A DNA stretch of 64,000 nt from Sphaerodactylus townsendi (GCF_021028975.2 NC_059431.1:80414001-80478000); one strand, 5' to 3'. Counted from the stretch's first letter, positions 19,876 to 58,457 are shown. The notes: a model not told the origin generated them from the sequence alone. Made by a program: numbers and translations.

Positions 19876-22084
19876 CCTATCAGCCCAGGTTGGTCCCAGT
19901 GATTCCAGACAACCATACTGCAGTGGTGGCTTGAATATAAACTTCCTGTCAACTGGCTTCCAGATCTCAGTACACCCTGTAGTCAAGATTGCTGGCTTTA
20001 AATTGCACTTATATTGATATTACAGTTCCAAAGATACCCCCCTACACACACACCAATGAAAAAGGCAAAGTAATTAGCTGACCACAGGCTGCTAAAGAAG
20101 GGGGCCATAACTTAGGTCTAATATTATGTCTCCCTCCCCCCACACTTTCTGCTGTAGCTGCTGCAGCCTGAGGACAAAGAGGCTTGTTATTTCCAAGCAC
20201 TTGCTGTTATTATATCAATATCTTGAAATATCAATATGAGAGTTTTGGCTAAGTCCATGTGAGTAAGCTTCCTTCTGTGAATTGAAGCAACCAGCAATGT
20301 GGGGGGGGGGGGCAAGGGAGAAGGTGTGAATGGCAGTGCAAGGGAATGGGAAGTGTGGCAATGGGCAGAAGGAAGATATCTGGGGTAAAGCTGTGCTCAC
20401 TGGCAAATTTATCCCACTCTGGCAGTGAAGCAAATTAAAATTGGGCTTGAAGTGGTCTTGCTTACTGCAGAGAGAATGGAAAGTGAAAGCAGGGCTTGAG
20501 GAAATGCATCTGTACAAGAAATCTTGCCATGATGGACATTCGCTCCCACCGCACAGAAGATACCTTGTACATAATTGACCTTAGAGTATGAGGGGCCTCT
20601 AAATAAAAATGAACTTAATTACCATTTTAGTAATGTTATGGGGTCTCTTAAGCTTGATATATCATATGGCCCTTAGCATGTCTTAATCTGAGATAGTCCC
20701 CTAGGAGGTTATGTCTGTTAGATACAGAGGCTTCTATAGGCAGATGATCCTTACTGAAGCTCATTATTGGACAATTCATAAGTAGTTGGGCCTGATGATA
20801 CTAAGCTCTTTCCTTTCTCCAGCCACCAGGACATGGCACATAAAAGTTATACTGGCTGAAAAAGGATGGCTATAGAATCAGGACTGCAGCTGAAGTTCTG
20901 GCAAATCCAAGCTCATTTCCTTCCTTTCTCCAGCTTGAGAACTAAGATGGAATAGTTAATTATATAGCTGGTCAAGTGGAATAGCTGTTTTCTACTGGCT
21001 GATTGGTTCAATATGGAAAGTCAGGAGAGCTGCTAAGCACTCTAATGAGTAGACAGGACCAGACTAATACCTTCTATTTCCTCAGATTCCAAACAATTAC
21101 AATTAAGTTGGAACTTCTGAGGGCTAGAAATGGAGGAGCTTATGGACAAGTAGATCATTATGGCAGAACAACTCATATGTGACAGTTTGAGCAGTAGAAA
21201 TGGAACTATTTAAACTGTAGTGTGATCAAGAAGCCCCACAAAATGGACAATTAACGTGCTTCTCACCCTGGTACCACCTTTATCATTTCCTCCCTCTGAG
21301 TAGACTTTATATCGAAAATAGCTTCTACAAGGATTAAGACAGCAGAGGAGAAGAAGTTTGGTGGCAAATGAAAGGTGGAGAAAGGATACATAACACCCCA
21401 ACCACTTGCCTTCCAATGCTGCTTTTTATATGACACCCACGTAATTTGCTGACTGAAAATGTCCTAACTCAGTCTACTTTAGTTCACTCCCTCCCAGGAT
21501 GGAAATGTTTAAGCATTCCTCTTCTTGTTTTACCATTTCAAGCTCATCTTTATTCATGCTTTTCATGTTCCATGTGCCTATTATATGCATCAAACAGCTT
21601 TGGACTTCTGCATCCATTCACATCAATAAATGAACATTCTTTTGACTTTAATCCAGTTTCATCATTAAGAGTACTGTTCCTCGTAGTTGTCCTCCTTTCT
21701 TCCCCAGTAGCTGACTGAGTGCCATTCATCCTGGAAATATGATCTTTCAGCACAATATCTTTTTTGATTTTGGATTGTCTCATAAGGTTTTCAAGGTATG
21801 GGTTGGGAAGAAATGGTTTACCATTGCCTTCTGCACAGCACTAATCAGGGTTATCTGTAATGGCACTCTCATTGTCTACAAAAGATCTTCCACCAATGTC
21901 ACTTTTCATTACTGCTGCTGCCCCCCAGCTAGCCTTCAAGATTCCTCCATCCTCATCACCACTAAAATTATTTGTTCTCTTCTGTTGAGAGATACCATGG
22001 GCCACCAAAAATACAATAAGTGGGTTCAAAATCAAATTCAGGTCAAATAACACAATGTGCCAATCAGTAATTAGTTCAGAAGCT

Positions 22085-22280
22085 AACATGACTAAATTGA
22101 GGCAATAGTACTTTGGTCACATTATGAAAAGACAAGAGTCACTGAAAAAGATGGTAATGCTAGGAAGATTGGTAAGTTTGCAAGACCAAAGCTAGGCTGT
22201 TAATGACAGGATGCTTTGGAGAACATTGATTCATAGGATCACCATGAATTGGAAGCAACTTGATGGCATTTAGCACATAA
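22085..22280 (+). mobile_element. RTE/BovB-like LINE 3' fragment
   Basis: Encodes degenerate YFGHIMKRQESLKK..MLG, typical of the RTE-clade C-terminus. Confidence 0.6.
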
Positions 22281-23684
22281 ATGTGCCACTATCCAAGTGT
22301 TCTATAATACCTGGTTGGGTCCATAGAACAAGTTGAACAGTCATATTGGCCTATGCAAAATCCAAAAATGAGAACAAAATCCATGTAATACCTTTCATTA
22401 GGGCCAACTAAATTGCTTGCACAATGTCATGAGTATATTGGGTTGTTCAATTCCAAATAAAAAGAATCACACAGATTTCATCCTTGCTTTTGATCTATAG
22501 AGCCAACATTGTTGCTTATGCTCTGACAACAAACAGAATCAAGGTGATGCCCTTTCTGCTTCTAGTCACTTAGGCTGTGCTTTATTTGTTGCACAATTTA
22601 CATTGGGCTTAGGCAGCAAATCAGTGAAATAAAAAATGCTTTTATTTTGACATCTGCAGAAGAATTAGTATTAATGACTGGAACTAAGAGCCAAAATACC
22701 TGAAATACTGATTCACTTGTTTTTCCTTTAGCATTTTCCTTCATTCAGCTTTTCCACACATTAGCTGTAGGAATATCATTTTTCAAGATTAGAGGGAATG
22801 GTTTTTGACTTGAACTGCTACTGAGGGGTGGGGGGGGTGTTATTGCCTCTCCCCAGTTGGCTTCCCCCCCCCCAAAAAAAAACCCCTTCCTCAAGGGAGT
22901 TATTTACATAACTTTGAAGAAGCACTTGCTTGAAATTATCCATGTGCTGGTCAAAAACCAGAGACAGATAGTGAAAAAATGTCTGGTATATTTTGGCCCT
23001 AGGAGTCCCATCCAAAAGGGAGGGGAATCTGGTCTTGGGAATGGTGGGATTATTTTTCATTATTTCTTGATTCATTCAGCCTGTGCTTACCTTGCAGGGA
23101 CATAGGTAAGGGGGCGTCTTGGGTTCAAACCTCTCCCATTACATGTCCAGCTTGCTTGAAACAATGCATGGAATGGATCAGCCGGAACGCCCTCAGTCAC
23201 CGAACCCACCCATAAAAAATGTATACCTACGTCACTGCTTGCCTGTCTCTGTCTTGCGAGTTTTCTGGCCATGAGTCATATATTGGTCTTTAAAAATTAA
23301 CTTTAGGGCTGCAGTAAGCTGCCAGCAGAAGAACGTGTGATAAACTAGTCCAAAGAATGACCCATATTGTAACTATGAGAATGAGTCTCACATCCCAAAG
23401 ATTCTTAAAAGCTGTTATACTTACAGTATGTGTGTTTTGCCAAACATCTGTCTTCTATTGATCATCTCAAAGCAAGCTAGAGAATTTCACCATCCAGCTC
23501 AGTGATGAAAGCTAGAAAACAGAAGTGATTTTCAGCTAACGTAAGTGAAAAGATAAATTGACCACATGTAACATGAGATCCTTCATTTTAAAAAAAGAAA
23601 TGTATGTGCATTGGCTAAATATTTATCTGACTTTCTTTTAGCCTTCCAAAGCATCTCAATCAGAGGAATCTAAAAAAACTAAGC

Positions 23685-23696
23685 ATGCAATCTAAT
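23685..23696 (+). CDS. IL33: IL-33-like cytokine, putative start-codon exon (exon 23642-23696; MQSN)
   Basis: Acceptor CTTTCTTTTAG| at 23641, strong donor AAT|GTAAGT at 23697, phase 0 matching the next exon; ATG at 23685 has A at -3. The frame is open back to the acceptor, so an upstream coding exon cannot be excluded. Confidence 0.5.
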
Positions 23697-24152
23697 GTAA
23701 GTATGAGAATGAATCAGCTGTACATAGCATAAGATTCTTAAAGCATTTTAAAAAAGATTTATGTTTGCCTGCATGGTAGAGTTCTTAAAATGACCATTAA
23801 GCAGTAGTGATTTTAAAACTTTGCAATAATGCAACAAAAGATCCTGATTTTTGGGGGGAAGTCTATACAATTTCCCTACCTTTGAAACAGATACTAATAA
23901 ATTTTGGTTGTGGGGAGGCACTGAACTTGCCAGCTACATTTCTGTCTACCTGAGGGCTTGGAAAGATCCAGCTCTCCTAAGCCCCCAACTTTTATGTGGT
24001 TATTTCTACTGCCACCTTTCTAGTATTAAAAAGTGTCTCTTGCAGAAGGAGAAGCACTTCAGTTTTCTTTATCACAGTACTACTTAAAGGCTCTGTCTTT
24101 TTTTTTCCTTTGTCTCCTTTTCATTTGCCACAAGGGTATTTACTCCATAGGA

Positions 24153-24750
24153 CAGTGGTGGCGAACCTTTGGCACTCCAGATGTTATGGACTACAATTCC
24201 CATCAGCCCCCGCCAGCATGGCCAATTGGCCATGCTGGCGAAGGCAATGAAATTGTAGTCCCTAACGCTGGAATATAAGGTCTCCTACCCATTTCTATAA
24301 GACATAGATGGCGAACCTCTGGCACTCAGATGTTATGGACTGCAATTCCCATCAGCCCCGCCAACTGGCCAGTGGCCATGCTGGCGAGAACTATTAAGTG
24401 TAGTCTAACATCTGAGTAAGAATGCTCCCTACGACTACTCTCGAACATAGGTGGCGAACCTCTGGCACGGGTGCCAGCAGTGGCACTCAGAGCCCTCTCT
24501 GTGGGCACTCACAAACAGTTCGACATGTGGGGGGGAATAGCCCCCCCACATCTAGACTAGTCTGGGCTGCTGGGCTTGATCATTAGCATTAAACCTAAGA
24601 CCTCGTTTTGGGGAAGCAGTGTAGGTAACCCTGTTAAGCACTGCTAAACCCCACTAATTTTCATGCGAAGAACTAAAGCACGATCCTTTATATGGGAGTA
24701 AGCTCGGTTGTGGCAATGGGGCTTGCTTCTAAGTAAACCCTTGCTGGGTT
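24153..24750. mobile_element. Cluster of degenerate hAT MITEs
   Basis: Three tandem CA(G/T)..(G/A)TGGCGAACC starts; two resemble the 5709 palindrome, the third resembles the 29415 element. Confidence 0.7.
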
Positions 24751-24759
24751 GTGAGTCAC

Positions 24760-25530
24760 CCATTCAAAGAGTTGCATGGTCCAGTTCTTCAACTGCAGAT
24801 TTTTTGGGATGGTTAAACTGACAGTGTCTTCCGTGTTCCTTAATTCGGGTGTGAATGCTGCATTTTGTGGTTCCTATGTAGACCTCTCCACAGCTACAGG
24901 GTATGTGATATACTCCTGCAGAAGTGAGGGGGTCTCTCTTGTCCTTTGCTGAGCGTAGCATTTGCTGTATTTTCCTGGTGGGTTTGAAGATGGCTTGTAG
25001 GTAATGCTTTTTCATTAGTTTCCCTATTTGATCTGTGATTCCCTTGGTGTATGGTAGAAATATTTTTTCCTGTGGTAGGCTGTTTCTCCTCAGTCCTCTG
25101 GGTTTCTCTTGGTCTTAAAGATCTTCTGATTTCTGTTGTGGAGTAGCCATTAGCCTGCAGAGCCCAATCTAGATGGTTGATTTCATCAGAGAGGAGATGA
25201 GCTTCACAAATTCGTTTTGCACGATCTGTGAAAGTTTTGATTATGCCCCTTTTCTGTTGTGGATGATGATTGGAGTTTTTATGTAGATATCGATCTGTGT
25301 GTGTCGGTTTTCTGGTTTTCTGTATACTGTGTGGCCCAATTGTTGGTTGGGTCTGCGAAAGACCAAGACATCTAAAACAGGCAGTTTCCCTTCTGTCTGG
25401 GGGCGGCCGAGATGCCTCACCCCGAACCTGTCCAGCTGGAAGTATGATGATTTCTGGATCTGAGCTGAGAATCTTAATAGCATTTCTTTCCTTTCGTGTA
25501 ATATTGCTGGAGGGAAGTTTTGCTTTTCGC
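24760..25530 (-). mobile_element. Penelope-like retroelement fragment (RT C-terminus plus GIY-YIG endonuclease)
   Basis: GVYHIPCSCGEVYIGTT..IHTRIKEH (GIY-YIG) and RKPTHTDRYLH.NSNHH.QQK (PLE RT thumb); frameshifted. Confidence 0.88.
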
Positions 25531-26291
25531 AAAAATATTGCAAAAACAACAAGAATATTGCAAAAACAGCAAGAATATTGTGTAAGAAAGCGAGAGCCAA
25601 CAGCAGCAGTTACAATTCCTGGATCTCATATTCAAAATAACCCCACCCCACCCCCTACCCCGCCAAAAAAACACATTAAGTGCAGAATTTAATTCCAAAA
25701 TAGCAGAGAAAAATAATATTAATCAACTTCAGCCATCATTACTGTGGGATCAAATTTTCATGGTAAACCAGGGTAGTAAAAACTGTGAACTCTAGAAATA
25801 AAAGAACACAGATGCTGAGGTGCACGTGATGTGATCATGGACAAGGACTGAACACTTGGGAACCACGGCTCACTAGAACAGCGTCTGACATGCAGAAACT
25901 CTTGGGTTCAATCTCTGTCACCTCCATTAAAAAAAAAGATTGTGTAGTAGGTGATGTGAAAGACCTCAACCACTCTGGAGAGCTGTTTCCAGTTTGAATA
26001 GGCAGTACAGACCTTGGTGGACCAATGGTCTGATTTAGTGTAAGCCAGCTTCATGAGCTTACTCAGGAAAGATTCTTTTAAGTAATTGTTTCCTGGTAGG
26101 AAGGGAAATCTTCCTCGTGTGTGCAGCTTTTTGTACTGCAAACACTGATCATTCCTCTTGCTCATAAAAATGTACAGAGAAGCTCTTACATGAATTCCAA
26201 TGGTGCATTACTCTAGATTTTAAGAGTAAATTGCTTCTTAAAGAGATGGCTATCATCAGCTTAGCATAATTGAAATCATGTATTTTTCTAG

Positions 26292-26403
26292 AAATCAACT
26301 GGACGTTTTCAATATAGAGGCCAGGTTATGAAATGTGTATTAAAAGCCAACTCCAAAGTGGTGCATTTTGGTTCAGCTGGAATATCTCTTCAGGATTCAC
26401 AAG
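26292..26403 (+). CDS. IL33: IL-33-like cytokine exon (KSTGRFQYRGQVMKCVLKANSKVVHFGSAGISLQDSQ/G)
   Basis: Acceptor TATTTTTCTAG|, donor CAAG|GTATGT, 112 nt, phase 0 to 1. Aligns without gaps to human IL-33 TYNDQSITFALEDESYEIYV (Y..Q.h.h.L...S..h.h). Confidence 0.75.
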
Positions 26404-26966
26404 GTATGTTTTGCATAATTCAACATTACAAGTTAGTGTATATATGTTTCTCATGTTGACCTTTTGCTAAATGTTTACTTAAATTTCCTTATTGTCCAGA
26501 GTCCCACTTTGCTCTCTGGGCCTTGCCCAAGGAGATTTGGGGTGTGCCTCACCATAGGTGGTAGGACAACAAGGACCGAGTCAATATTATGGGCTCCTCA
26601 AGGAAATGTGGACTTGCAGAACCAGCATGGAGTTGGCAGAGATGCCCGGCCCTGACTTTGTTCTCCTGCTTGGCTGATGAGGGGAGGGAGAAGGGAGGCA
26701 TGATGATTTCTGATAAAGCCAGGTGGGTCTCATAATTGCTCTAGGAGTGGTGTGGGAATTTTTCCATTAATAAAGACAGGTTTATAAAACCATTGATTCA
26801 TGTGTTATTTTTCTCAAGGCTAATGCTGTAGGTTTACTGTAAAAAAAAAAAGACTGTTTGCCCACAAAATCCTAAAAGTAAACTCTCAGCCCTACTGTGT
26901 CAAAACATTTTAAACTTTAATGTTTAAAGTGATTTAAACTTAAAATCTACAACTCAGCATGATGAT

Positions 26967-27225
26967 GATGAAGAAGAAGAGTTTGGATTTATATCCCCCC
27001 TTTCTCTCCTGTAGGAGACTCAAAGGGGCTTACAATCTCCTTGCCCTTCCTCGACAACAAACACCCTGTGAGGTAGGTGGGGCTGAGAGAGCTCCAAAAA
27101 GCTGTGACTAGCCCAAGGTCACCCAGCTGGCGTGTGTGGGAGTGTACAGGCTAATCTGAATTCCCCAGATAAGCCTCCACAGCTCAAGCGGCAGAACTGG
27201 GAATCAAACCCGGTTGCTCCAGATC
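26967..27225 (-). mobile_element. Squam3-like SINE
   Basis: Reverse complement of the 18440 copy with a GAA/GAT tail. Confidence 0.8.
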
Positions 27226-27419
27226 AGATGTGTTTCCTTTGTGATCTTTGAGGATTAATAAATGCCTCATCATTAATTTTTGCTAACATCTGATCATGAA
27301 AGAAACCTTACAAACATATTTAGTGAAGATTTGGATAAGACTAGCAAAAAAAGTCCACCAAAGTGTTGTTTTCAATATTAAAAAGCACCAGCCCTAACCT
27401 AATACCAATGCATATGGGA

Positions 27420-27860
27420 TCCCGCTTCTTATTTCCCTCCATTGAACAAAGGGTCTATTCTTTTCGTTCCTGTTGCTTACCCAGTTTTTAATCCAGTTGC
27501 TTGACCAGTTTTTAATCCATAACAAGACCTGTCCTCTTATCCCCTGATTGTTAAGCTTAGGAGTCTTTAGTGATGTGAAAAGCTTCTAAAAGTCCAAATG
27601 TAATGTTTATTGGCTCACTGTTATCTATATTTTATTCACTTTCTCAAAAGGTTGGTGAGGCAAGACTTCCCTTTGTAGAAGCCATGCTGATTTCCCTTCA
27701 GCAGGCTTCATTCATCTGTGTGCCTGATAATTCTTTGATTATAGTTTCTACCAGTTTGCCTGGAACAGAAGCTAGGCTAAGTGGACTGTAATTTCCTGGT
27801 TCCTCTCTGAACCCTTTTTTTAAAAAAAGAAAAAAAAACTGGTGTAATGTTCACTCCTAG
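27420..27860 (-). mobile_element. CR1 LINE fragment
   Basis: Reverse complement resembles 49200-49520 (NYSPLSLASVPGK, QHGF, GIRGQVLLWIKNW). Confidence 0.7.
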
Positions 27861-28250
27861 GTCTTCTGATACATCTGATATTAATGGCAAGTTACACATA
27901 TTGGTGATCTTATAAGTTTCCCCGAAGTTTGTGAACATATCTCCCTCTTCTATTTATCAGCTTAATCTGTGGATTTTAACAAGCTGCATCAATACAGAAC
28001 TGGATACATGATAAAATTTATTTATTTTTAGATTTTTAGACCACCCTCCTCCACCCTCATAGGCATATATTCCAGGATGTAGTTTGCTTTAAGATCTTGT
28101 CCTACTTTAAAGTGCATTTCTATGCGTGTGCAAAAAAAAAATCTGTTAAATTCAGATTCAGGTCTAATGGATAAGAGAATCTAAAATTAATTCATGTTGC
28201 TAAACTGTAGTAGCATAAAAGTGTTTGTTATTTTTGTTTATTATATTTAG

Positions 28251-28286
28251 GCAGTCAACCATTTACTTGGATACACCACTTCAGAG
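28251..28286 (+). CDS. IL33: IL-33-like cytokine short exon (G/SQPFTWIHHFR/D)
   Basis: Acceptor TTTATTATATTTAG|, donor GAG|GTGAGA, 36 nt, phase 1-1 like the short phase 1-1 exon of human IL33 (DKVLLSYYESQ...). Confidence 0.7.
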
Positions 28287-29414
28287 GTGAGAATCTGGTA
28301 ATTATATTGCTTTAAAAAATATTTTTGATAGGTTGATTGTTTCAACCTTTTTATAAAGCACTGAGGACTCTGCTGTAGAGCCTGAAGGTATTATGGAGCC
28401 ACAGCTGGCTCCTTGTGAGGAGATGCAGGCAGCAGAGCCAGCTCCAAGCCCTTCCCTGCAACCCAAGGGAGAAAGTGATGCTATGCAGCTAGGAGAACTA
28501 TCAGGAATCTCAGAAGAGCTGAGTAACAAGCCAGCTGTACAAAGGCAGGGTCCCAGCCTCATTAGTCAAGACTTCCTACATAAATAATGTTGTGGGCTTG
28601 GTTCTGTCTGGGTACAATAAATGTACTTCCTGGTAAGCTCTACATGCTTGGTCTTCCTCTGACCTCCAGCTCCCAGCCTGCCTGCCTGATCTCCTGCCTA
28701 TGCCTTGACTCTGGACTGCCTTGACCTTTGTCTGAAACTTGCCCTGACTCTGGTCTGTCTTGACTATGTCTCACTTGCTGCCTGCCTGAACTTTGGTCTG
28801 TCTGGCCACACCCTAGCTAACACATGCTGACAGCAAAGCAGTCAATGCTCCAAAACGAATCTTCAAAAGTTATTATGAAATAATGTAGGCAGGGCAATAT
28901 GGCTTTTCTTCCCGTTTCGCTGTTCCAAGAACAAAAGCCTTTGAAATACTCATTGGCTTGAAGTTTACCACAAAAAATATTCCTTCATTGAAGAATTCTC
29001 CCACAGTGAGAATCTTAATTTCTGCACACTCATCTCACAGTGGTGTTCATTTGGACTTACTGAACTTACATGTTCTCCTGCAGCTTCTTGTGCATTTCCA
29101 TTCATTCTGTTTGGTGGTTTGTATGCTGTTATCATATTGCTTTTGCTTTCTGTTGTGCCTTTTTAAAATATATACTGTATATTTCCTCTGATTCCTTTAT
29201 ATATGTTGAGCCTATTGTGTGGCTGTTTTTGTGTTATCTGTTGTTGATAGCTTGCTAATCGCCACCACATGTTCCTCTTTGTTTCCTTTCTTAATCATAG
29301 GTCAAAGAGGTTCTCTGAAGTCCCAGTTTTCATTTTTTAAAAAGTAGGTTCCAGTCTCTTCCCTTGCAGAGATATGCCTTCTTCCTTATACCTCCACAAA
29401 GAAAGGGCCTAAAC

Positions 29415-29746
29415 CAGTGGTGGCGAACCTATGGCACACGTGCCAGAGGTGGTACTCAGAGCCCTCTCTGTGGGCACGCACACACAGAGTTTGTCATGTG
29501 GGGGGAGCGGAAAATCGCCCCCTCCCCACATCTAGGCTGGCCTTGCTTCTGAGTAAAACCTCCTAGGGTCGTGATTCACCCGTTTGAAGCATTGCATGGT
29601 TGCTTCGCCTCCTCGGAGCAAACTGTTTTTTTTCTAAACTAAAACCTCAGTATTCAGTTAAATTGCCATGTTGGCACTTTGTGATAAATAAGTGGATTTT
29701 GGGTTGCAATTTGGGCACTCTGTCTCGAAAAAGTTCGCCATCACTG
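29415..29746 (+). mobile_element. hAT MITE
   Basis: TIRs CAGTGGTGGCGAAC / GTTCGCCATCACTG, perfect 8-bp TSD GCCTAAAC. Confidence 0.9.
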
Positions 29747-31157
29747 GCCTAAACCCATATTTTTTAAAAATACAGAAGCTGATAATGTAGACAATCTGCT
29801 TGGCCTTTCATTATAGCACCATATTGATATTTTGGTGCTTTTAAAAGAAAAATTAGAAAAGAAACCGTGCATCTTCAGGATGGGAGAGGAGGGGAAGTGG
29901 TTTGATGACAGCAGTCCAATCAACAAAAAGTGGACTAGTAGGTGGGAGTGGACAGGACAAAAAAAATAACAGAAATGTTATGGAAAAAGAAAAAGGTGTC
30001 TCAAAACTGACTTTCAGATCAGGTTAAAAGTGGTTTCAGAAGAAATGGGAAAAATGGAAAAAATAAAAAGCAAAACAAAAAGTGAAAATTAAATGCCTAA
30101 AATGTATGCAGGAATAAAGAGATAAACTGAAGAAGTATGGGGCTAGGAGCAATGAGAAAAATCCATGTGGAAAGTCCTTTATATTCCAAAATTCTTGGTT
30201 TATGTGTGTTTTTTAAAAACATTTTGGTATCTTCTACCATATTATGAAGTCTTCCCAAGTATCCAAAACACACCTTGTTGAACCAGTAGAGTTCCATAAT
30301 TCATAATAAATAATTATGGTTGCCCAATTATTAGTAAAACATGGTCAGTGCAATCCAATTTTGCAGCAACTGGGGATGGAGCACATAGCTGCGCCACCTC
30401 CAAAGAGATTTGGGTGGCTTAACAAGTAATGAAAATGAGAAATACCTGGCTGCCTGAAAAATCCCCAAGTGGGCTACAACTCACTTTTTTATAGTATACA
30501 TCAGCTGCTGGGGTAGGGAACATTCCAGGTTGAAAGCCCTTTAGAAGCTGACCCTTGGGAACGTCTGCCCCCCCCCCCCCAACACTGGCACGGCTCCTGC
30601 AGCAGATTAGTACCAGTGCAGGGAAAACTTCTGCATTCAGCTACAGTGCCCCACCACGGACACAAATGCCCCTCACCAGTGTATTTGCCCCTCTGCTGGT
30701 GTATGGGGCATTTGCATTGGCACACCCTTGTGCTGCCTCCAAAACGATTTCATGCCCCCCGCCAGAGATGGAGCAAGGGGAAACTATGCCTGGGGCGTGC
30801 ATGTGCCCTGCACCCTTGCTGCAGCGTTGCCTGTCCCCGCCCCACCCCGGAATGCCCACCACACCCCCTTGACAGCCCAGCCACCCTCCACTGCTGCTCT
30901 GCCTGGGGCATCGTGCCCCCCCCCGGCGCTATGCCACTGCCCCCCACCCTTAGGACTACATGGTAAGTATTAATGGCAATGGTTAACATCTCCATTTTTG
31001 CAACTGACCTGTCAATTTGTGGATAATGCAGTTCAGTTTCGTCTTTAAGTTATCTTGGAAAAACTAATAAATTCTGTATTTCATTGTATATTGTTAACTG
31101 CTTCTTCCTAGAATTAAAAATTTAAGCCACAAAACAAGCCTTCTTATGTCTTTCCAG

Positions 31158-31252
31158 ATCGGAATAGTAGAAGACCTTTGGTTACCTTCACCCAGAAATC
31201 AAGAAATAAATTTTGGGTACTGACTAAAGACAAATATGGCAACAACCTGAAG
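31158..31252 (+). CDS. IL33: IL-33-like cytokine exon (D/RNSRRPLVTFTQKSRNKFWVLTKDKYGNNLK)
   Basis: Acceptor TTATGTCTTTCCAG|, donor AAG|GTATTG, 95 nt, phase 1 to 0. Matches the penultimate human IL33 exon (DGVDGKMLMVTLSPTKDFWLHANNKEHSVE, 92 nt, same phases): VT and FW conserved. Confidence 0.82.
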
Positions 31253-33732
31253 GTATTGGTTTTCCTTTATATCTGGAATAAAGATAGGAATTGAGAATTG
31301 AAGAAACATTTGACTGTCTAGACATTAATTGGTTGTTATTGATTGCTTTGTCAATAACACACTTGCAATTCACACAAAATACTTCATAACAGTAGTTTGC
31401 TTTGAGTTTCAGTGAAAGAGGTAGATTATGCATGCATGCATACATACATACATACATGCCCCATATTTGAATTTTGGAAGAATGGGCAACATTCCATGGT
31501 ACATATGCAGTTTCCTGTTTAAAATGTAGATCTTGCTTTATGTTACACTTAACCTGCAAATTTGAGATTTTTGACTTTTTCATAAGACATATTATTTACA
31601 TATTTACAAAACAAGACAATACAGAAGGGAAGTATTTATTGTTCAGTCCTCAATAAAAACAGGACCCTTCTTTGATTTCAATAGTCTTAGGAGGGTATAT
31701 CTCTGTTTAGGATTGCACTGTTAGCTACTTCCCCAAATGAGCAAAATTCCCCCCCCCCAAAAAAAGAGGGGGAGCTGTTTTCATAATGAGTAAAACAAGA
31801 AAGCCACTACAGCAAAATCACCTGTTGCTTTCAGAGAGTACACTAGAGTCTGTTTACTTCTTTGGCAGAATGGAACAAATAATATTTTCATAGGATGGTT
31901 CTACCAAGTCACTTTTACATCTATTTGCCTTTTCAAAAACTTGACCCAGCTCTAGAAAGGCAGGACAGATCTTGATGGCTAATAAGAATACATGTTTCAA
32001 CCCATTCCAAACTACACAGAGGCATGAAGAACCTGCTACTTGGTTATCTTTTCACTTCCAGATGATGATTTACATAAAGTGGAAGAAAGATACTGCAATT
32101 GTTTGTGTGTGGGGTGTGTGTGTGTTTTGAAGTAAAAACCTGAACTATTTCATTGAGCTCTTCATTTAATGAGATTCCAATAGCAGGCTTTCCACAGAGC
32201 AGTAATGTAATGTGGTTGTTTGTTGGCTTTGAGTTTTAGTTGATTCTTTATAATTTTAGAATTATGTGAAGTGGTAAATAAATATTCTCTTTTCTAATAT
32301 GTCTAACCCAAATTATGTGTCAAATCACTAACAGACTCTTTAGCTTTCTGTTTTTGAACTGAACTTCATCATATCAGCCTTTGATTAGATTCTTATCTTC
32401 TTTTCTTCAGGAAGCTGAAAACATCATACTGTACTTGGAAATAGACTATATCCTCAGGGTGCCTTGGGCTAATTGGCTTTTCTGTATAATCCTGACCTAA
32501 CATCACTGGTGTAGTGAGGGGAGGTGTAGGGGGGCTAGAGAACCAGGTTTCACTTCCCACAGTCATGGGGGAAGCGCTTTGCAGGACCATCCCCCTCTTG
32601 CAACTGTGCCCTGCCCCTGAACTCTCTGTGGAGATCAGGGCAAGGGTTCAGTTGAATGCTGACCAGCGGAGCAAACCTTACTGGCCCTGCTTCTGAACTC
32701 CTTGTGGAGTTTGGGGGTGGGGCAAGCCCTTCTGCCTGGTGTTCAACAATGCCTGAGTCCCAATCTTCATGTGGAGTTTGGGGGAGGGGCACAGCTGCGG
32801 GGGGGGGGGTGCCCAGGATGAGCCCTGGGAGCCTTTTTACACAGCTATGCCCCACCTTACATGACTAAAGGACCCCAAAGTATGAAAATGCTTTGATGAG
32901 AACTATGGCTATGTTCTTTCCCCAACATTGATGGTTGATTTCCAAATCCTTAGCAGAAGTTGTTTGCACCCAATGGGAAAAGAATGAAGGCCAAACTAGA
33001 TTTGACAGTGCCCTCATAGTCCTCTTTATGCCACCAGCACAATTTTAAAGTCATTTAAAAATACATTGAGGGTACTGATTGGGCCTGCAGCGCAGGCAGC
33101 TGAGGTGTCTTTGTCTCCCCCACACCCTGTGATTTATCTAGCATCAGAATGGCTACACTCCCTTGCAGCTGTTTCAGCACTTGAAAAGATATATGGGGAA
33201 GAAAAGCACTGTGTTGCAGGCACAATCAGGATTAAATGACTGTAAAATGTTAATATTAAATTACTGTAAAACGTCAACAGCATAGCAGCCATGAGGATGC
33301 CATCACCTCTAGTTGGGTCCTGAAGTGCCGTCATCAAATGCACTGAAAACACCAAACTGTGTAGACTACATGAACCTGCTCCATGCTGGTATTATGTTCC
33401 ACATCAAGACCTGAGTAAAATTGTAATTTCACTCACCATTTCCTTCTGTCTCCCCGAGTCCCTGCATGTGCTCCATGCCCCCAGTTACTATCTAGTCTGG
33501 ACCAGGCTGTGATGAGTGAGGGTGTGGAGCCCATGGAGCGGGAGCAAGGAAATGGTGGATAAAGCTGCAGTTTTACTTAGGTCTTGATGTGAAACACGGT
33601 ATAACTTGAGTTCTTCTCTTTCATCCCCAGTTAATTGGCGAGAAGTTAAGTCAGAATCAATCCTTAAACAAGTCATTAGGATAAATCTGAATAGAAGATC
33701 AGTCTTAATATTTGGGGTGTCTGCTTTTTCAG

Positions 33733-33777
33733 CTCTATTCGTATAATCACAGTGATGAGGAACCTGATGTCCAGATG
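33733..33777 (+). CDS. Candidate extra or cassette exon of the IL-33-like gene (LYSYNHSDEEPDVQM)
   Basis: Acceptor TCTGCTTTTTCAG|, strong donor ATG|GTAAGC, 45 nt, phase 0-0, open and frame-preserving; no counterpart exon in human IL33. Confidence 0.5.
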
Positions 33778-34600
33778 GTAAGCAATGAACTAATTCCAGT
33801 TTCTGAAAAGAATGTTTAGAATACATTATAGAACTATTGTATGCCAGGCCCAAACAGTTTGTGACCTGCGAAGTCAAACCAGCCCACAGTCCAGATTTCA
33901 GTAAGTGAGTGAATGGTTTGACAGCCCTCACCCTTTCTAAAGTCCTATGTAGGCAATAAAAACAGGTTTAATAAGTCTCTATTGGGCTTCCATACATGGC
34001 TCGTGGGCCTATGCTTAATTTGGTGCATGACAAGGTCTACAGGCCAGCTTTATATTAGATTGTTTCATGCTTCCTATTTTCCCAATCCCTCATTTGCATT
34101 GTCTGTTTTCTTGTGAAGACAGAATATTGAGAATATTGAGGATTTTTTCCCTGTCTGGTTATTCACAATTATACAGGCATATCCAATGGGAAGAGAAAAG
34201 CGGGCACATAGCAAACTTGGTTAGGCTCAAAGCAGTATCTACCTCCATAGTATTTGTTTAGAGTGTAGTTCAAGGAGACATACAATTTAAAACATACAAT
34301 TTAAAGCACCTAAACATTTTCAGTATATCATACCTTTATTATTATTTTTTAAATGCTGGTAGCATAACATGCCACCAGCTGCCCACAAAGAATGGCTCAC
34401 TCTAGGGACTCCTGAGATTGAAGCAGAATTATGAACCTTGTGATGTAAGGTTGACATCTAGCTTAGGCAGCTATGTGTGACTGGCTCCAAAATCTTTTTA
34501 GGCATAGAAAAGAACTGTGGATGGAACATTTGTCACCATGACTGGCAAGCACCATAAAGGTTATTGATTGGCCAGGGCTGCCTTGTTTCTTTACCTAGTC

Positions 34601-35302
34601 CAGGGGTTGGGAACCTCCAAGAGCCATTTGGCTCGCTCGCCCCCGCTCGCCCCCCCTGCCCGCTCGCCCCCACTCCCTCACCCGCTTTCCCGCCCTCCCA
34701 CTCGCCGCCCGCTTACCCGCTCGCTCCCCCGCTCGCTCGCTTGCCCCCGCTCGCTTGCCCCCGCTCGCTTGCCCACCCGCTTGCTTGCCTGCCCACCTGC
34801 TCGCCCTCGCTCGCTTGCCCGCCCGCTTGCCCGCCACAAACTTTTACTCGCTTGCCCGCCCGCCCCCTTCGCCCCCCTGGCCGCAGCGCTTGCCGCCCGG
34901 CTCCCTGCGCTTCCACTTTCGCATTTCGCTCTTTGCTTGCCGCCCGGCTCCCTGCAGCCCGGCTCCCTCGCCCACTCGCTCGCCCTCGCTAGCTTGCCCG
35001 CCTGCTCGCCCACTCGCTTGCTTGCCCGCCCGCTCGCCCCCCGCCCGCTCGCCCCCCGCCCTCTTACTTGCCCGCTTGCCCGCCCGCTCCCCCTCGCTCG
35101 CTCGCTCGCCCGCTCGCTCACTTGCCCACCTCCCGCCCACTCACTCGCTTGCCCTCACCCCCGCTCCGCTCGCTCACCTGCTTGCCTCGCTGCCTTTAAT
35201 TTCTGCCTGGGCTTGCACGGGAAGGGGCAGCCACGTCAGAAGCCACAGGAGAAGCAGCGAAGAGCCGCTTGCGTTTCGGGAGCCACGGGTTCCCGACCCC
35301 TG
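34601..35302 (+). mobile_element. hAT MITE with CpG-rich (CTCG/CCCG/CTTG)n interior
   Basis: TIRs CAGGGGTTGGGAACC / GGTTCCCGACCCCTG, 8-bp TSD ACCTAGTC/ATCTAGTC (1 mismatch). Confidence 0.85.
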
Positions 35303-35392
35303 ATCTAGTCAATAGAGTAATACATTTGCCTTGCTATGTTTCAGTCTCCAGCCAACATAACAAAGCTCTGAGAGACTGGGCTGGCCCATATA

Positions 35393-36142
35393 CCGTATAT
35401 ACTCGAGTATAAGTCGACCCGCATATAAGCCAAGGCACCTAATTTTACCACAAAAAACTGGGAAAACGTATTGACTCGCGTATAAGTCGAGGGTGGGAAA
35501 TGCAGCAGCTACTGGTAAATTTCAAAAATAAAAATAGATCCCAATAAAATTACATTAACTGAGGCATCAGTAGGTTAAATGTATTTGAATATTTATTTCA
35601 AAGAAAAACAGTAAACTAGCTCTGTAGGCCCTGATTCTCCCTTTAAATCTACTCAGAAGGGGGGGGGGTGATTTAAAGGGAGAATCTGGGGAAAATTTGA
35701 GGGTGCTTGTCAGGGGAGGAATGTTTATGTTAGCAGTACAAACATTTCAGAGTATCTTTAGGAGACCCTCCTGATGATACCACTCGGGTTTGGTGAAGTT
35801 TGGCTCAGGGGGTCCAAAGTTATGGACCCTCAAAAGGGTAGCCTCATCTGCTATTATCTTCCATTGGAAACAATGGGAGATGGGGGCACTCCCTTTGGGG
35901 GTCCATAACTTTGGACCCCCTGAACCAAACTTAACCAAACCTGGGTGGTATCATCATGGGAACCTAATGATACCCTGAAATTTTGGTGCCGCGCTAGCCT
36001 AAAAACTTTGCCCCCTGGCGGCCGACAAAGTAAAAACCCTAAAATATTTTTTAAAATACACCTCACTCGTGTATAAGTCAAGGGGGACTTTTTCAGCACA
36101 AAAATGTGCTGAAAAATTCGACTTATATGCGAATATATACAG
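35393..36142 (+). mobile_element. Tc2/pogo-like MITE (second copy)
   Basis: CCGTATATACTCGAGTATAAG TIR, TA flanks; first ~230 bp nearly identical to the 1572 copy. Confidence 0.85.
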
Positions 36143-36574
36143 TACATTATAAGTCTCACATCAAATATGGCTGCCCATATTATGAAGTCCTTGTTCACTT
36201 AGTAAAGCACAAATGTACCTGACATTAGTCAAGAACTTCTGCATAGAGTAAGCCTGAGTTCAGATGAGGTTTCACATAAGATCACACAGGGGTTGGAAAG
36301 TTGAAATAACCAATTCTTTTGTCTTTTAAGACTTGCCATGTGAAATGAAATGCATTATCTAGAATCCAAAAGGAAAGTGAAACTTCTTGGACATTCAGCT
36401 CTGCAGTGTCCTTAAAAATTCTGAGAAACATTATGCTTTAAAAACTGAGCATGAAGCCATTGCTCATGCATGTACATTAATACAGATAATTATTTTCTTT
36501 TCACTATAATGTATTAGAAAATTTAATAAAAGTAGGAAACTTAAACAATGTATACCACTTTGTGTTTTTCACAG

Positions 36575-36769
36575 TTATTGAACAAGGGGCTCGAAGAACA
36601 CCTTTTCATCAAGCATACACGTGAAGCACTATCTGTATCATTTGAGTGCCATGGTGATAGAAATAACAGTCGTTATCTGTATGTGAATGACAATCTTAGC
36701 GTGCAGTACAAGAAAGGAAATGACCTTCCTGATGGACAAAATTATCTCTTCCAATTGGAAAAGAAGTAA
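36575..36769 (+). CDS. IL33: IL-33-like cytokine terminal exon (LLNKGLEEHLFIKHTREALSVSFECHGDRNNSRYLYVNDNLSVQYKKGNDLPDGQNYLFQLEKK*)
   Basis: Acceptor TGTGTTTTTCACAG|, phase 0, 195 nt including stop. Matches the human IL-33 last exon (...FFVLHNMHSNCVSFECKTDPGVFIGVKDNHL...ENILFKLSET*): F..H, VSFEC, V.DN, N.LF.L and stop position conserved. Confidence 0.88.
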   Translation, partial: LLNKGLEEHLFIKHTREALSVSFECHGDRNNSRYLYVNDNLSVQYKKGNDLPDGQNYLFQLEKK

Positions 36770-36989
36770 CTAGACTTACAAGAATCCTGTTTTTAAAAGG
36801 CTGTAAATTACAGACAGTAGACAGGCATCCAATCTTAGAATCCAGATATGATAAGCCAAGATGATATACCACATCAACCACATATTTTTATTCCTTCTTC
36901 CTTCTCTATAGGCTACAATTTTTTCCCCATATAGTGATGTCACATGAATTGTGTTTCTTCATCCCATGTCAAGAAAAGGAAGCAACATT

Positions 36990-39960
36990 TTAAATAATAT
37001 TTTATTAATTTTTTCAATATAGTTAACAAAAATATGAAGCAGAAAAAAGTCAGTAAAGACAAAACAGAAAAGGTAATATAGCTACCCAGAAACTGTATGA
37101 ATATTAATTTGAACTCATTGGATCTTGAGATCACATAACTAATATCAGAGAGAATGTTATACAGTCTTAACATTCACTACCTTCTGTCCACTGGCTCTGC
37201 AATATCACTAAACAATTTCTTGTATCTTGATCATTAACAAATTAGTTTTCTTCCTGCTATTATTTTTACATAGTCGATTCAGCCTCAAATAAGAAATACA
37301 GTTCCCATTTATCATCAAATTCATGTCTTGACGATCTGTTAAAAAGGTTTGGTAATTTAGCCATTATAGCATATTCTCTAATGTTATCTTCCCAAAGTTC
37401 TGCATTAAGAGTTTTACTGGTTTTCTAACAAGCTGCAGTTATTATTCTTACTGCGGTTATTAAGTGACATTAAGCTTTTTGGGAATATTTTCTGGTAAGA
37501 TACCTAGTAACATTGTTTTGGCAATAAGGGGAAATCTTAATTTGATTATTTTTTGCATTTTCATGTGTATTTTTATCCAATACTTCCTAATTTTTTTTAC
37601 AAGTTCACCACATATAGAAGAAGGACCCAACTTCATGACATCTCCAGCAGACTGTCACGAAGAATGATCTTCTTGATCATTTCAGTAGTTATGTATCATC
37701 TATATAACTGTTTATACCAGTTCTCTTTTAGCATTTGGCATGCAGTAAGTTTAATGCTTTTAGTCTATAATAGTTCCCATCACTGAAAAGTTATCTCTTT
37801 TTTTAGATTTAGCATCTATTTCACCATGCATATATTTACCTGTTTCATTTCTGGTTCTAATTTTAGCAGAATCTTATGTATTCTTCCCATCAAATGTTGT
37901 TTCTGTGAGGTAACCTCTTTTTCAAAATTTGACTTTCATATACTGTGTCCCCCCCCTCCCCCCCCCCCCGTGATTTTAGTTCTCTTCTGAGTCTGGATGT
38001 TATCTGAAAATATATCAGTCATTGTATTTTCTTGTCCTCCTCCTTTATCACATGCCATCATTTGATTTTCCCGTGCTTGTTGATAATTTCCTTACAGAGT
38101 ATATTGTCATTCTTCTTCTATGTTTCTGTATCAGAAGTGGCTTCCATGGGAGATTCTCGAGGAAAATTTGGAGGGCCAAGTCATACTTTTTTTCCCAGAT
38201 TTCAAAAAGTCCGTTTCTTATTACATGGGAGTCTTTTCTCATCTGCTCTGTCTTTTGGACATTTTTTTTCAGCCATAGATAATTATGTATACCTGTTGTT
38301 AAATCTGCAGTTTCTAATTTTACTAGTCTGTGAAATGGATTTAATATCCAATCAGGAATCCACACAAGTCCTGCTGCTTGATAATATAGTTTAATATTGG
38401 GTGCAGCTGGGCCTCTTCTTTTTTCATCTTGTAGAACTTTAAATCTTATTCTTGGACTTTTATTGCTCCAGATAAATTTATTAATATGTGTTTGCCATGC
38501 GTTCAAGGTCTTTTCATGTATATACATATAAAGCTGAAGTTTGGACCATCTTTGTAGAACTACTTGAATTTTTTCCAGGTTGTTCTTGTTTTGTTAAAAA
38601 CCTTGTGATAATTTTTTTGCTGATTAATTTTATATCCAGCAAAATGTCCAAATAATTCTATTTGATCCATAAAATGTCTTATTGAAAAGTGAGGATTACT
38701 TATTTGACATAATCTGTGTAACTTTTAACCTTTAATTCTTTTCCTTCTATTTTTAGAACTGTGATTCTTTCATCTTGTCTAATCTTTGTTGCCAAGAGTT
38801 CCAAAAGCAGGATGAATAATAGCAGTGATAATAGACATCTTTGCCTTGTTCCCATTTCAGTTTAGATTTCCTCTGTCAAAGTACCATTAATTAATATTCT
38901 TGCTCTTTGTCTAGTGTATATTCTCTGTATCCAGTCTAGAAACCTAGGACCACAATTTATATGTTCCAATGTCTTTAACATGAATGTCCGTGAAATATTA
39001 TCAAAGGCTTTCTCTGCATCCAAAAAGATGAACGAGGTTTTCGTTTTCTTGGTCTTAGAGAATTTTGAAGCATCAGTTACAAATTGTATGTTGTCCTTCA
39101 TATATGTTTTGGGAACAAAACCTGTCTGATCCATGTATCATCTCCTGAATGCACTTTCTTAATCTTGCTGCCATTACAATTGCAAATAGTTTGTAATCCA
39201 CATTTAATAATGATATTGGTCTATATGACTGTGGCAGTTCTGGGTCATTCCCTTCTTTATGTATTAAAGTCACATGTGCCTCTTCCCAGGTCAGGGGGAA
39301 ATTCCCTCTTAAGTATAGCTCATTCATCATTTCTTGAAGAGGTACAATTATTTTTTCTTCCACACATCTGTATTTGTCTGAGATTAAGCTGTTGGGTCCT
39401 GGAGTTTTCCCTTTTCAATTTTTTTTTAGCCTGTGATAATTTAAAAATGGATATACTTTTGTTCAGAATATCTCTACTGTGAATTTCTTTTATGGGAATC
39501 TGGGCAATATAATCTTTTAATGCTTCTTCTTCCACGTTTTGTTTTTTTATAAAGTTCGGAAAATAAAGAAGCAAATGGTTCTTGTATTTCTCTTTCTGAA
39601 TATACCAGAGTACCATTTTTAAAAACAGCTATTATTGTCCTTCTTCTAATTTCTTTCCTCAACTGGTGCACTAAAATTGTCCTGGCCTGTTGGTATGCTC
39701 AAACATTTTTGCTTCAAAATCTTAACTTTTTTTTTGCATTTCTTCCATTTCTAATAGGTTCTGTTGATGTTTCAACATCTTCAGTTCTCTTAATGTTTCA
39801 TTATCTGTTGTTTTCTTATGATGTTCAGCCAATATTTTCATTCTATTTACAGTATTTCATTTCTTTTCCATCTTGTCTTTCTTCTGTTTAGTGGCAATTG
39901 CTATTAATTTTCCTCTTGCATATGCCTTGCTTGCTTCCAAGATAGTTGTATTTGACAGAA
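36990..39960 (-). mobile_element. Decayed L1-clade LINE ORF2
   Basis: PQSYRPISLLNVDYKL, DQTGFVP, FIFLDAEKAFD, INKFIWSNKSPRI...PNIKLYYQA motifs with many frameshifts; boundaries approximate. Confidence 0.88.
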
Positions 39961-44619: not shown

Positions 44620-45450
44620 ATGTTTGCACGCGCACAGATCAAGGAGAGGACCCCACGATATGCTCCGTGCCGTCCGCCACCGCCGTCCAAGATGCGTCGC
44701 CTGCGGCAGCGGCGCAAGAGGGCGTGGCCTCGGCTTCCAACAGGCTGGAGCGGAGCGAATCCGAACCGATTTCCTTTAAGCTCCGCCTTCGTCTTTCGCC
44801 TCTCCGTCGCCTCTTTAAGGTCGGGGCGGGGGCGCGTGTGGTGGTCCGTGCCTGTCTCGCGAGAACAGCGTTGGCGCCGTGACCTCCATGTGAGAGCGGC
44901 GCCGCCTGGTAAACAGTCCTGGGGGTTAGGACATGGCTCCCGTAGGCGCCCGTTAGCGGAGCCAAACCCGGTATCGTAGCAGAGGCTGGCGGCCATTCGG
45001 AGCTGGTCCCTTGGAGCCGTTGGGTACGGGCGACAGAAAACGAGAGGACGGGTGGAGCCGTGGTTTGCTGGTGGGGCCCGAGGGAGAGAGGAAGGAAGGC
45101 CAGCCGGAGGCGGGGAGGGGGTGAAGGAGCTTCGCGGGGGACCCTGGGCTGAAGAGGAGGGTTTCTTGCTCTCGCTTCCCCTTGCCAGTTTTCCTCCGCA
45201 AAACAAAGAGGCGTGAGAAGCCGTTTCCCTTGGCTGCGGGTCGGGTGCCTTTCACCATCCCGAGTGGGAGCCCGCCATGTGGATCCAGGTCCGCACCATC
45301 GACGGTGCCCAGACTCGGACCATCGAAGACCTCAGCCGCCTCACCAAGATCGAGAGTCTCCGCGAGAAGATCCAGGAGAGCTTCCGTGTGAGCCCCGACC
45401 GGCAGCGCCTTTTCTACCGGGGCAAGCAGGTGAGGCGGTGACATGCCGGT
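44620..45450 (+). promoter_or_regulatory. CpG island / promoter of UHRF2
   Basis: Dense CpG; GC box near 44823, TCTCGCGAGA palindrome 44855-44864, E2F-like TTGGCGCC 44871-44878. Confidence 0.8.
45277..45429 (+). CDS. UHRF2: UHRF2 first coding exon (ubiquitin-like domain N-terminal part)
   Basis: GCCATG start; [51 protein letters not shown], 153 nt, donor CAG|GTGAGG. UHRF family is certain; UHRF2 assigned from RTIDG/TIED and KIAA2026 synteny. Too short for the ORF track. Exon 2 not recognised in the window. Confidence 0.92.
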
Positions 45451-49139: not shown

Positions 49140-50579
49140 GAAATCAGCCTCCATCCTTGGACTGGAAGATGGCCAGTGTCACACCAAAGGATGGGGGGGG
49201 GGGGGAGGAAATTACAGGCCAGTCAGTTTGACATCTGTTCCTAATAAATGAGTAGAATCTACCATTAAAGATAAAATTATAAAACATGTAGAAAAGCAAG
49301 ACCTGCTGAGGAAGAGTCAGCATGGCTTTTGCAGAGGCCTACCTTACCAACTTACTAGAGTTCTTTGTGGGTGTAAACAGGATAAGGGGGAACCAGTGGA
49401 CATTGTCTACTTCGATTTCCAAAAGGCTTTTGACAAAGTTCCCGACCAGAGACTATTGAGAAAACTCAGCAATGAAGGAATAAGAGGGGAAGTTGCCCTA
49501 TGGATTAAAAACTGGTTGATAACAGAGGGGGGATGGCAGAAGGAGAGGGGAGTGGAGGGGACGCAAAAAGCAGCGCCCTCACGCACAGAGCCGCCTCCGG
49601 TTCAGCCCTCCATTCACCTTTCCTTCCAGCGCTGCTGCGGAGGGACATGCCCACGCTACCCTCTGACCTCCAGGACATGTGGAGCCGCAGTATAAGGCTG
49701 AAAGAGCCGCATGAGCCTCCAGAGCCGCAGGTTGCAGACCCCTGACATACACGCTACAGGGGTCAGTGCTATCAGTCACAGACCAGGAAAGGGATTTGAG
49801 CATCTTAGTTGATAGTTCCATGGGAATGTCAACTCAATGCATGGCAGCTGTGAAAAAGGCAAACTCTATGCTGGGGATGATTAGGAAAGGAATTGATAAT
49901 AAAACTGCAAAGATTGTCATGCCCTTATATAAAGCAGTGGTGCGACTGCACTTGGAGTACTGTGTTCATGTTCTGGTCTCCACATTTCAAAAAGGATATC
50001 GAAGAGATAGAAAAAGTGCAGAGAAGGGCAACGAGGATGATTGAGGGACTGGAGCACCTTCCTTATGAGGAGAGGTTGCAGCGTTTGGGACTCTTTTGTT
50101 TGGAGAGGAGATGTTTGAGGGGGGATATGATTGAAGTCTATAAAATTATGCATGGGGTAGAAAATGTTGACAGAGAGAAATTTTTCTCTCTTTCTCACAA
50201 TACTAGAACCAGGGGGCATACATTGAAAATACTGGGGGGAAGAATTAGGACTAATAAAAGGAAACATTTCTTCACGCAACGCATGATTGGTGTTTAGAAT
50301 ATGCTGCCACAGGAGGTGGTGATGGCCACTAACCTGGATAGCTTTAAAAGGGGCTTGGACAGATTTATGGAGAAGTAGATGTATGGCTACCAATCTTGAT
50401 CCTCCTTGATCTCAGATTGCAAATCCTTAGCAGACTCAGGAGCAGCAGCAGTAGAAGGCCATTGCTTTCACATCCTGCATGTGAGCTCCCAAAGGCATCT
50501 GGTGGGTCACTACGAGTAGCAGAGTACTGGACTAGATGGACTCTGGTCTGATCCAGCAGGGTCTTTCTTATGTTCTTAT
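49140..50579 (+). mobile_element. CR1 LINE 3' portion, internally deleted and interrupted by a MITE fragment (~49520-49744)
   Basis: DIVYFDFQKAFDKVP, QERDLSILVD, LYKAVVRLHLEYCV, RGDMIEVYKI, TRGHTLK motifs; TTCTTATG-type tail. Confidence 0.92.
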
Positions 50580-57895: not shown

Positions 57896-58178
57896 TTTAA
57901 AAAATCACATAAACAGCAAAAAAAAACCCTCGCACTTAACTACAGCTGGAGTAATTTACTAACTAAAAACTGCTCAGCAGCGTTGAGATGCAAGCTCATT
58001 CCAATTTGGAGGAATTCAAAACATTTAGAGCAACTTATTCAAGCTTGATGGAATTATTATGAGAAACGGCAGAAGGTTAAAAATATGATAAAAGTTAATA
58101 AATATTTGGTAAAAGTTAATAAATATTTGATAAAAGACTTGCGGAGAAGGTAAAAGCATGCTTCTCTAGGGTGGTTCC

Positions 58179-58270
58179 GGCCATCTTGATGGGTTGTACT
58201 TCTTTACCAATCGCTAGTCAGGCAGGAAGAGCTTTTGGTGACTTCCTGTTGGCGCCAAAACCCAGTATCT
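58179..58270 (+). repeat. DIRS left inverted terminal repeat
   Basis: Exact reverse complement of 63458-63549. Confidence 0.95.
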
Positions 58271-58457
58271 TCCTGCCTACGCTAGTTAGAGCAGCAATTT
58301 CGTCAGGCTCCTTGCAGTTTTTCTTCGTCCCTTCTTTTCTGTGGATTTCTTGTGTATTCCTTCCCTTCGTGGATTGTGAGTTTTTTCCCCGTTTGTCCTT
58401 CCCTCCGTCTCCAGTTTTTTACCTCAGCGGAGGAGTTTTTTCTTGCCCTCAGGGGCC

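Follow-up and report, generated by a model that had tools for sequence, protein, structure and literature searches.

A constrained six-exon gecko gene between KIAA2026 and UHRF as a probable IL33 orthologue

A spliced gene in the KIAA2026-UHRF interval

We analysed a 64,000-nucleotide (nt) window from the genome of the gecko Sphaerodactylus townsendi, which is free of N runs and to which all coordinates refer. Between KIAA2026 on the minus strand and the first exon of a UHRF gene on the plus strand, the window carries six plus-strand coding exons that, judged from the genomic sequence and its conservation, form a real, constrained and spliced gene. Its product would be a small leaderless cytokine, and the gene is probably the orthologue of IL33. 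The exons were read directly and their borders rechecked by script. They are listed here with the conserved blocks that precede them:

21194-23001, no strand assigned: conserved non-coding blocks upstream of the first coding exon (blastn, 68-81% identity with the gecko Paroedura picta)
23642-23696, plus strand: exon 1 (E1), first coding exon; acceptor tttag/C, ATG at 23685, donor AAT/gtaagt; 4 residues, phase 0
26292-26403, plus strand: exon 2 (E2), start of the conserved core; orthologous acceptor at 26325, internal ATG at 26328
28251-28286, plus strand: exon 3 (E3), 36 nt, phase 1 to 1
31158-31252, plus strand: exon 4 (E4), phase 1 to 0
33733-33777, plus strand: exon 5 (E5), 45 nt, an acidic loop with a D-E-E-P motif
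36575-36769, plus strand: exon 6 (E6), last exon, with the C-terminal third of the protein and the TAA stop

All internal exon borders have the form AG...GT, with a pyrimidine tract before each acceptor. The codons split between exons encode Gly at E2/E3 and Asp at E3/E4. Without E5 the coding lengths (12+112+36+95+195 nt) give a protein of 149 amino acids, and the 45 nt of E5 bring it to 164. This bears out the original prediction, made from the sequence alone, of five or six plus-strand exons with good GT-AG sites that read in frame into 149 or 164 amino acids; our translations match the peptide given there.

The same prediction had E5 as optional. Both lengths are indeed in frame, but the 149-residue form is unsupported: E5 is present in both RefSeq isoforms of the P. 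picta gene and should therefore be treated as constitutive. With E5 the intron phases are 0, 1, 1, 0, 0, so that the last three read 1, 0, 0; the ending of 1, 1, 0, which the prediction put forward as a likeness to IL33, holds only for the form without E5.

The 5' end of the coding region differs between the two geckos. The E2 acceptor that matches P. picta is the one at 26325, which makes a 79-nt exon, and the acceptor at 26292 is in frame as well, which leaves 11 residues at the N-terminus in doubt. E1 shares its acceptor and its gtaagt donor with P. picta, while its length and the site of its ATG are not conserved, nor are about the first 4-19 residues of the gecko protein. Because E1 opens at a conserved acceptor, we infer at least one non-coding exon further upstream. 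The blocks at 21194-23001, which give only stop-filled frames in tblastx against P. picta, may represent a promoter or an untranslated first exon, judging by their sequence conservation.

Coding constraint between two geckos

Searching 1.84 billion representative proteins with E6 returned a single true relative, isoform X2 of a P. picta protein (E = 1.5e-08); the second match is a repeat protein. The relative is the RefSeq entry "uncharacterized protein LOC143841144" (XP_077201083 / XP_077201086), which has two isoforms, X1 and X2. Isoform X1, of 167 amino acids, holds counterparts of E2 to E6, E5 included, and the sole difference in isoform X2 is that its last exon uses an acceptor 36 nt further in. 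When isoform X1 is aligned to the window with tBLASTn, it finds E2, E3, E4, E5 and E6 at the coordinates listed above. In P. picta these exons are 79, 36, 89, 45 and 198 nt long; their phases are the same, and the sequences around the splice sites are nearly identical.

Exon conservation in another squamate and the ratio of nonsynonymous to synonymous divergence (dN/dS, omega) had both been proposed as checks in the original prediction. The five core exons recur in P. picta. Aligned exon by exon over 142 codons, the two gecko proteins are 56% identical, with a dS of 0.55, a dN of 0.27 and an omega of 0.50 (Fisher p = 0.005).

Omega varies along the protein, from 0.15 in E2 (core 81% identical) through 0.45 in E4 and 0.56 in E6 (46% identical) to 0.88 in E5, an exon of 45 nt in both geckos. 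The E4 proteins are 56% identical, and the exons differ in length by 6 nt, which keeps the frame. E3, of 36 nt in both species, encodes protein that is 82% identical and lies at the centre of a block of DNA that is 85.5% identical.

Only 21% of the gene span is still alignable between the geckos, and all five core exons lie inside that fraction (chance about 4e-4). Three exonic gaps are seen against 9.5 expected: one of 3 nt and one of 6 nt, both internal, and one of 2 nt in the last codons. Among the intronic gaps in aligned sequence, 12 of 57 are multiples of three. The 2-nt indel sits just before the stop (36755-36769 in the window, 24335-24350 in the P. picta locus), where S. townsendi reads K-K-stop and P. 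picta N-I-S-N-stop. It alters the tail between the two geckos, and the extreme C-terminus is therefore not constrained. Apart from these last 2-4 residues, P. picta differs in having a longer first coding exon. Genomic contigs from a closely related species carry E4 to E6 intact, with one V-to-M change at 36701.

We considered whether the locus might hold no functional protein-coding gene at all and be instead the remains of a decaying gene, or give a non-coding transcript in which a frame happens to be open. Several observations fit such an origin. No RNA run containing this stretch was found and the four runs examined are genomic, no S. townsendi protein with these exons was found in a collection of 5.8 billion proteins, and the omega of E5 is as high as 0.88. 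In addition, neither AATAAA nor ATTAAA was found within 1.7 kilobases (kb) after the stop (36770-38500); the P. picta counterpart has an AATAAA about 870 nt past its stop. Nevertheless, the frame is open over five exons in two geckos that have diverged to a dS of 0.55, the splice sites and phases are kept, and the internal indels are in frame. Moreover, omega is 0.50 overall and falls to 0.15 in E2, and RefSeq models the P. picta gene with two isoforms. We therefore regard a relic or a chance frame as very improbable.

Synteny with the IL33 locus

Two coding exons anchor the interval on either side:

8301-8837, minus strand: 5' coding exon of KIAA2026 with a bromodomain (Pfam Bromodomain, E = 2e-07); upstream synteny anchor
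45277-45429, plus strand: UHRF exon 1, encoding a ubiquitin-like domain that begins MWIQVRT (Pfam ubiquitin, E = 1.1e-08), in a GC-rich island; downstream anchor

The gene had been placed in the KIAA2026-UHRF2 interval, and this location is confirmed, with KIAA2026 (-) upstream and UHRF exon 1 (+) downstream. In P. picta, KIAA2026 (PF23450, KIAA2026_hel) likewise lies on the minus strand upstream of the orthologue, and the window and the P. picta locus are collinear from KIAA2026 through the whole gene locus. Within the 36-kb KIAA2026-UHRF interval, the gene is the only conserved coding gene that we found, and it has the orientation of IL33. The human order is KIAA2026(-), RANBP6, IL33(+), TPD52L3, UHRF2(+), and the gecko gene occupies the position of IL33 between KIAA2026 (-) and UHRF exon 1 (+) and points in the same direction.

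The UHRF gene is presumed to be UHRF2, and not UHRF1, by its linkage to KIAA2026. Two stretches of its exon 1, S-R-L-T-K and K-I-Q-E, look to us closer to mammalian UHRF1 than to UHRF2, perhaps simply because sauropsid UHRF2 has diverged more slowly. RANBP6 and TPD52L3 are counted among the genes at the human IL-33 locus, and both sit elsewhere in chicken (PMC4090809).

Family signals in the gecko protein

Scanned against Pfam exon by exon, the gene gives a single match, which joins E6 to IL33_bt (PF15095) with an E value of 0.017 and 15.5 bits. The match covers profile positions 103-144 of 158, the corresponding C-terminal third. IL33_bt was the family to be expected from synteny before the scan, so the fitting chance level is the one for this model by itself, about 7e-7, and not the one for the full library. 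By contrast, Pfam IL1 (PF00340), to which IL-18 belongs, matches none of the exons and not P. picta isoform X2 either, at E values up to 10.

A profile built from the E6 of both geckos was compared with 177,635 PDB sequences and gave two matches, one of which is mouse IL-33 (8q5r_A, E = 2, residues 105-136). In the HMMER alignment F-E-C falls on F-E-C, and V-N-D-N (A-K-E-K in P. picta) falls on the mouse V-K-D-N. The Asp of the mouse motif is D in S. townsendi and E in P. picta; it is the only ST2-contact position that can be aligned, and we take it to be D244 of the human protein. Human IL-33 contacts ST2 through E144, E148, D149 and D244 as well as Y163, E165 and L182, with D244 in site 1 (PMC13702225). 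Chains of IL-18, IL-1 or IL-36 are absent from the PDB search matches. PDB searches with the E6 of either gecko singly, with E2 and E4 profiles and with a whole-protein profile gave no informative match.

A protein-language-model atlas was searched with P. picta isoform X1. IL-18 clusters came first (0.93, 188 shared features) and make up 13 of the 30 matches listed. Below them stand IL-33 (0.91), IL-1, and beta-trefoil inhibitors and lectins of fungi.

The highest Kyte-Doolittle mean of the protein over 11 residues is 1.0 and its N-terminus is rich in Lys; with no hydrophobic leader it has no signal peptide, as is usual in the superfamily. Asp is absent both from the 19-residue N-terminal extension of P. 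picta isoform X1 and from the S. townsendi extension, and there is consequently no caspase-1-type pro-peptide site. Just 4-19 unconserved residues precede the core, and in P. picta in-frame stops lie upstream of the ATG.

Probable assignment to IL33

Taken together, synteny and a set of convergent family signals, each of them below threshold when considered singly, lead us to read the gecko gene as the orthologue of IL33, with a probability of roughly 65%. On this sequence-based reading its six coding exons would encode a leaderless IL-1-superfamily cytokine of about 164 amino acids, consisting of little beyond the receptor-binding beta-trefoil core.

A number of observations weigh against this assignment. 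The 15.5 bits of the IL33_bt match fall below the Pfam gathering cut-off of 27, the PDB match to mouse IL-33 (E = 2) is not significant, and the P. picta protein, whether whole or as E6 alone, gives no IL33 or IL1 match. The family signal thus comes mainly from the E6 of S. townsendi. In the atlas IL-18 comes before IL-33, and with a recognition value of 2090 the search falls short of the level needed for atlas scores to count as strong evidence. AlphaFold2 models of P. picta isoform X1, made alone and with a small alignment, reach a predicted local distance difference test (pLDDT) score of 36.8 and 38.7. These models of very low confidence are nearly all beta-strand, and Foldseek against the PDB with the pLDDT 38.7 model returns noise only (best E 0.41, template modelling score about 0.2).

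The protein differs from mammalian IL-33 in ways that count on the same side. A conserved coding exon upstream that could encode a nuclear domain was searched for and not found; together with the in-frame stops before the P. picta ATG, this means that the IL-33 nuclear/chromatin domain has no counterpart here. The core is basic, with a net charge of +6 in both geckos and an isoelectric point of about 9.2 in P. picta. IL-33 binds ST2 mainly via acidic residues, through Glu/Asp salt bridges (PMC13702225), and the basic core therefore argues against simple conservation of the binding mode.

Finally, no orthologue outside geckos was found, either among the 1.84 billion representatives searched with E6 or among the 5.8 billion proteins searched with P. 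picta isoform X2, E6 and a fragment alignment. This last query was made with MAFFT and is partly misplaced; other MAFFT alignments of exon fragments also misplaced fragments and were not used as evidence. The gene model rests on genomic sequence; RNA runs that contain the stretch were likewise not found.

Some of these points raise the possibility that the gene is real but encodes an unrelated or unknown fold, and that it resembles IL-33 by chance. All IL-33 matches are below threshold, the structure models are of very low confidence, and in 5.8 and 1.8 billion proteins the protein of only one other species was found. On the other hand, three methods (Pfam, the PDB profile and the language model) point to one superfamily, and two of the three single out the family expected from synteny, at a collinear position. 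Such agreement is not what chance matches should produce, and we consider a chance resemblance improbable.

A closer alternative keeps the superfamily and gives up the orthology: the gene could encode an IL-1-superfamily cytokine that is IL-18-like or another lineage-specific paralogue at this locus, perhaps with another receptor (IL-18R-like). The lead of IL-18 in the atlas speaks for it (0.93 against 0.91 for IL-33, with 13 of the 30 among the matches listed), as do the short N-terminus, the missing nuclear domain and the basic charge, all unlike mammalian IL-33. Yet the gene is the sole one found in the interval that houses mammalian IL33 and has the identical orientation, and Pfam IL1, which covers IL-18, has no match whereas IL33_bt does. 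The PDB searches turn up IL-33 and no chain of IL-18, IL-1 or IL-36, and the N-terminal extension without Asp leaves no caspase-1-type pro-peptide site. We hold such a paralogue to be unlikely, though it is the main alternative.

The original prediction of a squamate IL-33 orthologue is partly supported, by a constrained gene at the IL33 position, an IL33_bt match, a PDB match to mouse IL-33 and language-model neighbours among IL-18, IL-33, IL-1 and other beta-trefoils, and it is held back by sub-threshold scores, by the first rank of IL-18 in the atlas and by the basic charge. If the gene is indeed IL33, its protein would be expected to fold as a beta-trefoil, to reside in the cytosol and to be released upon cell damage or lysis. 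It would then signal via IL1RL1 (ST2) and IL1RAP, whose genes lie outside the window, to MyD88 and on to NF-kB. The N-terminal chromatin tethering of mammalian IL-33 would be either a mammalian addition or a feature lost in geckos.

Repeats and mobile elements around the gene

The last intron of the gene contains a very high-copy repeat at 35300-36120. In both genomic runs its summed contig depth is in the millions, compared with about 75 in the flanks. The repeat has many joints and loose ends and is probably a SINE-like element.

Next to it, at 34560-35310, lie GC-rich (52% GC) degenerate GCTC/GCCC tandem repeats with periods of 12-54 nt. They give rise to long spurious open reading frames (ORFs) rich in Pro, Ala and Leu on both strands, and genomic contigs of the same species show length variants there.

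Fragments of reverse transcriptase from long interspersed nuclear elements (LINEs) are found at 38000-39620 (-), between the gene and UHRF exon 1, and at 49400-50400 (+), in a UHRF intron. Only 39073-39360 (-) matches RVT_1, weakly and below the Pfam cut-off (E = 5.9e-05); the rest was judged by eye.

A largely intact DIRS-type retrotransposon occupies 57446-63101 (+), inside the first UHRF intron. Its ORFs encode a LAP2alpha-like domain (58443-60185) and a reverse transcriptase with RNase H (60163-62073). A C-terminal tyrosine recombinase is recognised in a 955-amino-acid ORF at 60234-63101 (Phage_integrase, E = 7e-05).

Implications for the origin of IL-33

IL-33 is stated or assumed to be restricted to mammals in papers of 2018 (PMC5861070), 2025 (PMC12108812) and 2026 (PMC12953802, PMC13753702), which agrees with the common description from which the original prediction set out. 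Accounts of the IL-1 superfamily accordingly have IL-33 arise in mammals and ST2 earlier, so that an orphan receptor "found" its ligand (PMC5861070, PMC12108812, PMC13753702). The receptor, IL1RL1, exists in reptiles, in line with the earlier statement that sauropsids have ST2.

In chicken, no IL-33 was found and a breakpoint was described at the locus (PMC4090809, 2014). A review of the following year remarked that conservation of IL-33 is poor "even between mammals and birds" and cited the Ensembl entry ENSGALG00000020558 as the bird IL-33 (PMC4690019, 2015). IL-33 outside mammals is therefore not an entirely new idea, and a sauropsid candidate has stood in a database for years without study. 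Our literature search found no paper on a reptile IL-33 and no functional study of the chicken ENSGALG00000020558.

A conserved IL-33-like gene at the gecko IL33 locus would, if true, make the story of an orphan receptor unneeded and would provide a candidate ligand for sauropsid ST2. The ancestral features of IL-33 would also become testable, among them nuclear tethering, protease activation, the oxidation switch and the acidic receptor surface.

We can go further and suggest that the squamate IL-33 orthologue is a bare, basic, leaderless trefoil without a chromatin-tethering domain, and that the IL-33/ST2 pair is no younger than the common ancestor of amniotes. Sauropsid ST2 would then no longer be an orphan but would have its ligand. 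Sequestration in the nucleus and the acidic surface that binds ST2 would have been added later, in mammals, or else lost or recharged in geckos as ligand and receptor co-evolved. We see the arguments for and against this wider scenario as evenly balanced.

The result also corrects the annotation. Whether the gene was already annotated had been left as a question; it is predicted in the P. picta RefSeq set but has no name there, and the S. townsendi protein with these exons was not found in the protein collection.

Comparison with known systems

With mammalian IL-33 (PF15095) the gecko gene shares its neighbourhood and orientation between KIAA2026 and UHRF2. Both proteins are leaderless and have a core of about 150 residues, and in both genes the first coding exon is preceded by a non-coding exon, presumably so in the gecko. 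The best match to IL-33, though weak, lies in the C-terminal third and includes V-S-F-E-C and V-x-D-N. The differences are substantial: the gecko protein is without the N-terminal nuclear/chromatin-binding and central domains of about 110 residues, its core is basic where that of IL-33 is acidic, and its sequence similarity stays under the family thresholds. Of the four cysteines that we take to form the inactivating disulfides of IL-33, only that in F-E-C seems to be retained.

IL-18 (PF00340) is the nearest neighbour in the language model and is similar in size, leaderless and all-beta. In contrast to IL-18, the gecko protein has no PF00340 match, no caspase-1 site and no pro-peptide. The IL18 locus is also a different one, beside SDHD, TEX12 and BCO2.

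Among sauropsids, chicken ENSGALG00000020558 is a comparable case, a gene proposed as IL-33 that shows 'poor sequence conservation' to mammals (PMC4690019). The closest known counterpart is P. picta LOC143841144, a direct orthologue named only 'uncharacterized protein', which matches the S. townsendi gene in exons, phases and neighbours and is 56% identical to it in protein.

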